The translations under genes and the position numbers were made by a program. DNA of 64,000 nucleotides from Salpingoeca rosetta. Its lineage: Eukaryota > Protista > Choanoflagellata. A model generated the notes under the pieces. That model worked only from the letters and a program-made list of their open reading frames with translations, made no database searches and was not told the origin of the DNA. Location: contig JAWQFM010000002.1 in the NCBI GenBank assembly GCA_033442325.1, positions 1,351,078 to 1,415,077 of the forward strand. The letters are read 5' to 3'. Within the stretch, counting starts at the first letter, position 1. The number at the start of each line of letters is the position of its first letter. Of the stretch, positions 49,556-52,500 are shown one piece after another.

Positions 49556-52500
49556 CTAAGGGCGCGCGTCGTTCTTGCGGGACGGAGTCGTGTGCCGTCC
49601 GCTTCTCAGCGTCATGCCATGCGACACACCGCCGCTGCCGCTGCCGCTGCTGCCTTTCTTGCGCTTTGCTCGCGTGCGTCGTGGAGCAGCCCGGCTGTGC
49701 GTGTATTTGTGTGTGTGTGTGTGTGTGTGTGTGTGTGTGTGTGTGTGTGTGTGTGTGTGTGTGTGTGTGTGTGTGTGTGTGTGTGTGTGTGTGGTTGACA
49801 AAACGTAAGTAAGCGAGCGTGGCAACATCTGCATGCGTTACATCAAACCAACAAACAAACAGTCCTGTGTGATTGCACTGCACTTGTCTTTCCCACTCCC
49901 TTTTCCGCCTCCCACCCGTAAACTGTCTGCGCACCCTGGCTGCTGCTGTCCCTCCTGCGGCTTGGCTGCTTCGCCCTCGTGCCCGCGATGCGTTGTGGGC
50001 AGTGCAACAGGGCTGTCGGTCGACAGTCCAGAAACTCCAGCAGCGGTGGCCGTGGCAGCTCGCCCGCGTCCCTGCTGCGACAGAACAGAGAAGATGTGGC
50101 ATGATCGGTGAATACGTGGGGAGGAACCACAGGGTGGGAGTAGGGCAGTGGCGTAGGCAAGTGGGCTCATGAGAGAAAAAAAAACACACTTGTGCAAAGC
50201 ACACACACACACACACCACTCACACACACACACACACACACACACACACACACACACACACACACACACACACACACACACACACACACACATTCGCAGA
50301 CAACGCACCACGCCGCGCTTGCGTGCGCTGAGTCGGGTGAGTGGCGGCGAGAAAGTTGGCACATCTGGAGTGGAGGGCATCTGCGGGGACGCAACAGCAA
50401 CGGCGTGCGAGGACGCCTGGTTCGGGCGGCTCGGCGTCACGTGGACACGACGTGACACAGCCATGCCCGCCTCCGCTGCTGCTGCTGCTGCTGCTGCCGT
50501 TGTCGCGGGCTTGCCGACGTCAATGCCAACCACTTCGTCTTCGTCATCATCACTGTGCATGCCAACACCGTGGTGGTCGCTGTCGTGGTGATCATCACCA
50601 TCATCGTCATCATCGCTCGACTGCATGCCCATGTGCATGGAACCACGCAGTGGGGTCGCAGCAAAGCTGGGCGCCTCAGAGAGTGGCGGCGAGTCGCCAA
50701 CCGCCATGCTCACATCGGGCGAAAACGGCTCTGGCTGCTTTCGCTGTCCCCGCTGTTGCCGCAGCTGCGATGGCGGTGCTGCTGCTGATGGCGCTGTCTT
50801 GAGCGGCGTGGAGGAGACGGGGCCAAGACCACCGCTCTCCTTCTTCCCGGGCGGCGTCTCCCGCTTGCGACGCGGAAGTGCAATGGACGGTACGCGCGCG
50901 GCGCTGCGCGGGGTGGACAGGCGGGCACTGCGCTGCACACTGCCGGACTCCGGGCGAGACAAACGCACCATGGGCGACGAGGGCTTGCTGCTCACGAGCG
51001 GGGACGACACGCTCCCAGGCCCGGCCACAGCTGTCCTGGCCAGTGCTGGCGAGGATGACGATGAGGGGGACGGCTTGAACCCACCGCCGCCGCCGCCGCC
51101 GCTGCTGCTGCTGCTGCTGCTGCTGGCGCTGCGGAGTGAGTGCAGCAGATGGTGCCGCAGTGTTGCGCGCGCCTCATGCTCTTCCTCTTCGCCTTCCTTG
51201 TGCCCCTTCTCCGTGGTCGCTGCCGCCGCGGCCTGTGCGGTGAGCGGTGTGCGGGCGAGCGGGCTGCTCGGCGCCTTGCGCGGCGTCATGGCCATTGCCC
51301 GCTGCACGGATGGCATCACCAGCACAGCACCAGCAGCCGTCGTGGTCGCCGTCTCGGCCACCTCTTTGCTCGGCTCAGCCTCTTCGCGCTGCTGCTGCCT
51401 CTGTTCCTGTTGCTGCGGCTGTTGGTCCTCTTGCTCTTCCTCCTCCTCCTGCTTCTCCTCCTCCTCCTCCTGCTGGTGCTGCTGCGCCGGTGTCTGCGGA
51501 GAGAAGATGCCCATGTTGTCCGTCACGGTCCGCGTCGGCCCCACCCGCGGTGTGGGCAAATCCGTGCCGCCACGACCCGCTGCACCAGCACGCACAGCCT
51601 CCTCGGCAATGCTCACGTGTCGCCCGTCCTTGCGGTGGTGCGTGGATGGCGTGGTTGGCGTGGCGGGCGTGCTGTCGTCGTGGGTGCGGCTTGCATCGGT
51701 GCTGAGCATGCTTGCGTGGTGGCGGTCAGACATGAAGCTTGTCGAGGCCGAGGTGGAGGGCGTGCTCATCACCTTGGGCAGGTTGATGGTCACGTCATCA
51801 TCGTCATCCTCCTCCTCATCATCCTCCTCATCATCATCATCCTCATCTTCATTGTCTTCCTCCTCCATTGCGGCTGCGCGTGGAATGTGTTCCTTGGACG
51901 TCTCTGCAGACGCGTCGGCATCTGTCGTCTCGTCCATCGCCATGCTCTCCTCCATAATCCCCTGCAGCGCACACGTATCACGCGTTTGTATGTGCACATG
52001 TGTGTATGTGTGTATATGTGTGTATGCGTGTGCATGCGTGTGTGCGAGTGCGTGAGGGTGTGTGTGAGAGTGAGAGAGAGCAGTAGATGGTTCGTTGAAC
52101 CGACAGTCCACACCCATGAACATACGCATGCTGACACGCGCATGTCTTCCAACCAACCGCATGTGCAGCTCCAGCGAACCGCTGCTGCAGCGTCGGCGAC
52201 GCATACTCCGGTGGCGTTGCCAACGCCCTGCATTCATGTAAATTGTGTATGCGTGCGTGTGTGTGTGTGTGTGTGTGATTGGGGGTGAATTGGGGCGCGC
52301 ATGAAGCGTTTACGAGCGGTTGGGAAGGAAGGGCTGGACACACAATGGGGAAAAAAGGACGTACGCAAATGATGTCTCGTGCATGGAAAGGCGACGAGGT
52401 GTTGCGTCGGTGTAGTTTAGCCTGATCAGATGGGTGCAGCTGAGTAAGCAAAGGCGCCAAGGACATGCACGCACAAAGCAGCGCCGATCACGCAAGCAAA

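Follow-up and report, generated by a model that had tools for sequence, protein, structure and literature searches.

Does ELYS of the choanoflagellate Salpingoeca rosetta end in a nucleosome-docking peptide of the type carried by the viral protein LANA? The question was raised by the 3' end of one gene in the window, the whole stretch of 64,000 nucleotides that was analyzed. The original prediction placed the last exon of ELYS at 49556-49690, joined in frame to the preceding exon as GG/gtgcgc...cacag/C, and read in it the motif GMTLRSGR, by which it likened the C-terminus of the protein to LANA and IL-33. A cellular version of the viral tether was proposed from this, together with chromatin-seeded NPC assembly by a full-length ELYS outside animals. 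Positions given below are those of the window unless another sequence is named, and all features of the ELYS gene lie on the minus strand.

The gene is ELYS, as had been claimed, on the evidence of the PF13934 match, an ELYS-like beta-propeller fold, and a published orthologue listing. Its coding part, as traced from the NCBI annotation and our own exon chain, extends over 49556-59797. The NCBI annotation was taken from scaffold GL832958.1 (GCA_000188695.1), whose sequence at this locus matches the window exactly, the coordinates being shifted by 37312; the annotated minus-strand ELYS gene has its low end at 12244 on that scaffold, corresponding to 49556 in the window, and the NCBI product at the locus is 1678 amino acids (aa) long and carries PF13934. 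In the Pfam search, the ELYS domain PF13934 scored 30.3 bits against a gathering cut-off of 28.8 at 53910-54755, a second, weak match to the same family was obtained in 54748-55548, and the exons with the domain, separated by introns, occupy 53991-55308. A sequence search of PDB with the ELYS-domain exon gave no ELYS match. The protein XP_004997250.1 has been named as the S. rosetta ELYS orthologue in a survey which detected none in Monosiga brevicollis and, in Chromosphaera perkinsii, an ELYS that is full-length and animal-like (Shah et al. 2024). Full-length ELYS outside animals has thus already been published.

The first coding exon (59145-59797) was tentatively assigned by predicted fold to a part of the N-terminal beta-propeller, which has seven blades in full-length ELYS of the metazoan type, a sequence search with it giving no match to Pfam or PDB. 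Its 219 aa were modeled by AlphaFold as an all-beta structure of low confidence, and with this model, covering the first exon alone at pLDDT 51, the top Foldseek matches were the Xenopus and human nuclear-pore chains 7wb4_N, 7r5k_T0, and 7vci_T, with mouse ELYS 1-494 (4i0o) also among the best, at E values of about 2e-4 to 8e-4. These ELYS-like matches of a predicted structure make it likely that the protein is built of a beta-propeller, an ELYS domain, and a long disordered tail.

The 3' part of the gene consists of a large tail exon (50309-51961) of about 551 aa, low in complexity and presumably disordered, and two short exons downstream of it. The penultimate intron (50075-50308; 234 nucleotides [nt], GTGCGT...CAG) contains a (GT)n microsatellite and is followed by the penultimate exon (49935-50074; QGRGRAAT...QQQPG), the last intron (49695-49934; 240 nt, GTGCGC...CACAG), and the terminal coding exon (49556-49694), which comprises 45 codons and part of a split Gly codon and closes with TAG at 49556-49558. 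The donor of the last intron reads AGG/GTGCGC, in the context CAG CCA GG/GTGCGC, and leaves 49935 as the last exon base; at the acceptor, CACAG/C, the intron ends in ACGCACAG, and the exon begins with the C at 49694. Database searches were made with single exons, and the last two were joined to read the frame. The phase-2 join GG/C is in frame and yields ...QQQPG-RAAPRRTRAKRKKG...GMTLRSGRHTTPSRKNDARP-stop, so that the protein terminates in ...SRKNDARP. The predicted join was accordingly reproduced as a 240-nt GT..AG intron that splits a Gly codon, and the predicted exon kept its end at the TAG at 49556, its start being moved by 4 nt from 49690 to 49694.

We infer, with high confidence, that this terminal exon belongs to the ELYS mRNA and is spliced to it in vivo. 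The annotated CDS ends at 49556, which is the final base of the stop codon of the terminal exon. The large open frame, if simply extended, would stop at 49838, and an annotated end at 49556 therefore means that the public model has an intron ending between 49837 and the stop. The other two frames of the region stop at 49612-49614 and 49545-49547, and the annotated end is allowed by the frame of the terminal exon alone. It follows from the annotated end that the exon is part of the public model, itself refined with RNA-seq, as the original prediction required; data from eight conditions went into the refinement of the S. rosetta annotation, in which 98% of the genes are backed by transcripts. 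The GTGCGC donor and CAG acceptor resemble the splice sites at other ELYS introns, including the first two, where the exon boundaries are set by comparison with a homologous gene in a marine relative, and the 132 nt preceding the last acceptor are without any AG.

The opposing reading, in which the exon lies outside the mature ELYS mRNA, the 3' gene model is wrong, and the protein ends elsewhere, for instance at 49838, draws on codon usage, which scored positive for the large tail exon and no better than intron sequence for the last two exons. The terminal-exon region is moreover open in all three frames, which makes the open frame there uninformative. Our own dynamic-programming exon chain came to 1603 aa in place of the annotated 1678 aa, and for that reason it was not used to confirm the last junction. 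Against the annotated end, the RNA-seq refinement, the likeness of the splice sites, and the AG-free stretch, we regard this reading as improbable.

Several further features of the locus were recorded. Long (CA)n or (GT)n microsatellites are held by many ELYS introns (49100-60400), and the last intron carries a (CA)49 tract at 49696-49793. The apparent donor consensus of the gene is GT[GA]CG[TC]; exon-chain scoring favored that consensus, and it is consequently independent only at the first two introns. No Rfam match was found at 49000-50400. The convergent neighbor (47315-49111, plus strand) encodes a 598-aa PPR/TPR protein, annotated to begin at the second ATG of its open frame. Its stop lies only 444 bp from that of ELYS, and the 3' untranslated regions of the two genes may therefore overlap.

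Within the terminal exon, the minus-strand codons from 49618 to 49595, GGC ATG ACG CTG AGA AGC GGA CGG, spell G-M-T-L-R-S-G-R, as originally read, a putative chromatin-binding motif of the LANA/IL-33 type MxLRSG. The hexapeptide MTLRSG itself (49598-49615) satisfies every MxLRSG position, and the AGA codon at 49604-49606 specifies the putative arginine anchor. When all 64 kb of the window were read in six frames, the pattern M.LRSG was encountered once. Estimated from the composition of the tail, its chance expectation is about 8e-7 per position, which amounts to about 5e-4 over the tail of about 645 aa and about 2e-5 over the last 25 residues; the three extra matches to LANA (G, R, and T) reduce the chance further by a factor of about 3e-4, again from the tail composition.

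These figures bear on the possibility that the exon is real and the resemblance accidental, the tail contacting chromatin or DNA, if at all, by bulk positive charge. Such an accident is made easier by a motif that is short and a tail that is rich in S, R, and G, and some chance motif matches are to be expected when very many windows are scanned. A precedent for diffuse contacts is provided by human ELYS, in which redundant basic segments bind additively and none is singly essential. The searches for relatives, moreover, matched no C-terminus with which MxLRSG could be compared. The expectation of about 5e-4 for the hexapeptide in the tail, lower again by the factor for G, R, and T, speaks against an accident, as do the location of the motif at the C-terminus, the docking site of vertebrate ELYS as well, and an independent second acidic-patch look-alike, RSARLS, in the same tail. 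Even allowing for the many windows scanned, chance is not the likeliest explanation of the motif, and we consider it unlikely, if the most serious of the competing readings.

The search for relatives reached the 5' part of the gene. When the first exon was compared by phmmer with a set of 1.84 billion representatives, a single true relative was returned, an uncultured marine organism resembling choanoflagellates and represented by ENA/TARA metagenome contigs, in which exon 1 is about 40% identical and exon 2 is 68% identical over 59 aa. The two exons stand in the same order there, and the introns are filled with microsatellites in that organism too; its contigs, at most 4.9 kb long, break off at microsatellites some 1.5 kb from the start of the gene and cover the 5' part only. 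The same phmmer search did not return the annotated ELYS of S. rosetta itself, the N-terminus of which may be annotated differently or the protein of which may be absent from that library. Word searches with the tail, with the end of the large exon, and with the terminal exon gave no C-terminal relatives, and scans of JGI metagenomes with the terminal exon and the first-exon alignment gave no matches. With no orthologous C-terminus found, the MxLRSG motif may be private to one species.

Other short elements accompany the motif in the tail. Upstream in the terminal exon lies a basic run, RRTRAKRKK (49655-49681), which resembles a classical nuclear localization signal (NLS) and may function as one. 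Downstream, TPSR (49577-49588) begins four residues after GMTLRSGR and is a putative phosphosite with the full CDK consensus [ST]-P-x-[KR]. Five sites of this consensus are present in the tail of about 645 aa, compared to about 1.2 expected from composition, the other four being in the large exon at 51275-51286, 50798-50809, 50645-50656, and 50426-50437. TPSR, the site beside the LANA-like motif, could serve as a mitotic switch. The large exon also holds the basic run PRRKRE and, at 50915-50932, the sequence RSARLS (context QRSARLST), which looks like the HMGN/Dsup core and may be a second acidic-patch contact. An AT-hook was sought in the tail, where Pfam gave no match, the large exon contains neither GRP nor RGR, and the penultimate exon has only GRGRA; RRK is not present within the last five residues, the end being ...SRKNDARP.

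The NLS-like run and the TPSR site in the terminal exon are also what would be expected if the module were mainly one for nuclear import and regulation, that is, an importin or transportin site under phospho-regulation and no nucleosome anchor, and the last 50 residues of Xenopus ELYS do bind importin beta and transportin. An import role is, however, compatible with an anchor, for the same Xenopus residues serve import factors and the acidic patch, and it leaves the position-by-position match to LANA unexplained. We regard an import module without an anchor as improbable.

On balance, we lean to the view that the last exon of S. rosetta ELYS is real and encodes a compact C-terminal chromatin-docking module, the binding being read from sequence. 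The module would consist, in order, of the basic run RRTRAKRKK, a Gly/Ser linker, GMTLRSGRHT, and TPSR. S. rosetta histones are assumed to keep the acidic patch, as histones in general are conserved. Docking in the manner of LANA would have the arginine of LRS inserted into the H2A E61/D90/E92 pocket and the Met and Leu of the motif packed against the hydrophobic edge of H2A helix alpha-2, by which ELYS, and with it the Nup107-160 complex, would be held on nucleosomes. Further weak contacts would come from the upstream RSARLS and from the scattered basic runs, comparable to the redundant basic segments of human ELYS, and the tail may be regulated by importins or CDK. The complete scheme, in which an ELYS from a pre-metazoan lineage docks on the acidic patch by a LANA-type hairpin and an HMGN-type motif and is switched by the CDK site and an importin-binding basic run, is put forward more tentatively, at slightly under even confidence. 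Altogether, the interpretation of the ELYS C-terminus as a nucleosome anchor is plausible and partly supported; chromatin-seeded NPC assembly outside animals, the broader claim made for this locus, is an extrapolation. The literature found makes no mention of a LANA-type motif in ELYS of a choanoflagellate, and its presence there appears to be new.

The nucleosome binding of vertebrate ELYS is diffuse and redundant, which makes clean separation-of-function mutants hard to get. If S. rosetta ELYS depends on a discrete anchor of the MxLRSG type, one or three point mutations could be enough, and in this CRISPR-tractable choanoflagellate such mutants could address whether acidic-patch docking is needed for post-mitotic pore assembly and whether the docking of ELYS on the acidic patch predates animals. 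The anchor Arg would then be a single-residue handle on chromatin-seeded pore assembly in a genetically tractable animal relative. The motif would also be the first of the MxLRSG type in a family already known to target the acidic patch; it would bear on whether MxLRSG arises by convergence, and the "mimicry" motif of viral LANA and of IL-33 would gain a cellular counterpart in the pore-assembly pathway.

Among known acidic-patch binders, LANA offers the closest comparison. Work in the field makes use of the LANA peptide MAPPGMRLRSGRSTG..., of which residues 5 to 14 are GMRLRSGRST. The crystal structure (PDB 1ZLA) has R9 as the arginine anchor, seated in the pocket of H2A E61, D90, and E92, with M6 and L8 lying against H2A helix alpha-2 and R7 forming a salt bridge to H2B E110. 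Of the ten residues of the LANA segment, eight recur in S. rosetta GMTLRSGRHT (G, M, L, R, S, G, R, and T), among them the hydrophobic M6 and L8, the anchor R9, and S10, G11, and R12; R7 is replaced by Thr, at the free "x" of MxLRSG, and S13 by His. With every MxLRSG position satisfied as well, the likeness to LANA and IL-33 drawn in the original prediction holds. The motif is placed in both proteins at a terminus, within a disordered-looking segment. In LANA it is N-terminal and belongs to a viral protein, whereas the putative motif of ELYS is C-terminal in a cellular nucleoporin.

IL-33 binds the same H2A-H2B pocket via MxLRSG (aa 40 to 58) and is, like S. rosetta ELYS, a cellular protein; the hexapeptide consensus is fully matched in ELYS. 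In contrast to ELYS, IL-33 is mammal-restricted and unrelated to nucleoporins, and the two have no homology beyond the hexapeptide. The second element of the tail compares with the nucleosome-binding core of HMGN and Dsup, RRSARLSA, which also contains an arginine anchor (PMC12487698). QRSARLST shares six of the eight core positions, including the anchor arginine; its first Arg is replaced by Gln, and the site is internal.

Vertebrate ELYS is of the same family, and its C-terminus is an established acidic-patch binder, competition by LANA included. In Xenopus, the last ten residues of ELYS (RRK 2404-2406 of 2408) are needed for nucleosome binding, and C-terminal residues have been placed on the acidic patch by cryo-EM and cross-linking; in the human protein, binding by the C-terminus (2157-2275) depends on the acidic patch, and the LANA peptide displaces it. 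Sequence identity in the ELYS C-terminus is low among metazoans, and all metazoan ELYS homologues have a C-terminal domain with at least one AT-hook (PMC4920428). A sequence search of PDB with the S. rosetta terminal exon detected no similar chain. Vertebrate ELYS thus has RRK, redundant basic segments, and an AT-hook, where S. rosetta ELYS has a LANA-type motif instead, and in both the site lies at the very end of a basic, disordered C-terminal tail. The use of RRK and diffuse basic charge by vertebrate ELYS, the lack of a similar PDB chain, and the AT-hook that was looked for and not found all count against the anchor reading. By analogy with its vertebrate counterparts, S. rosetta ELYS is expected to bind the same H2A-H2B acidic patch.
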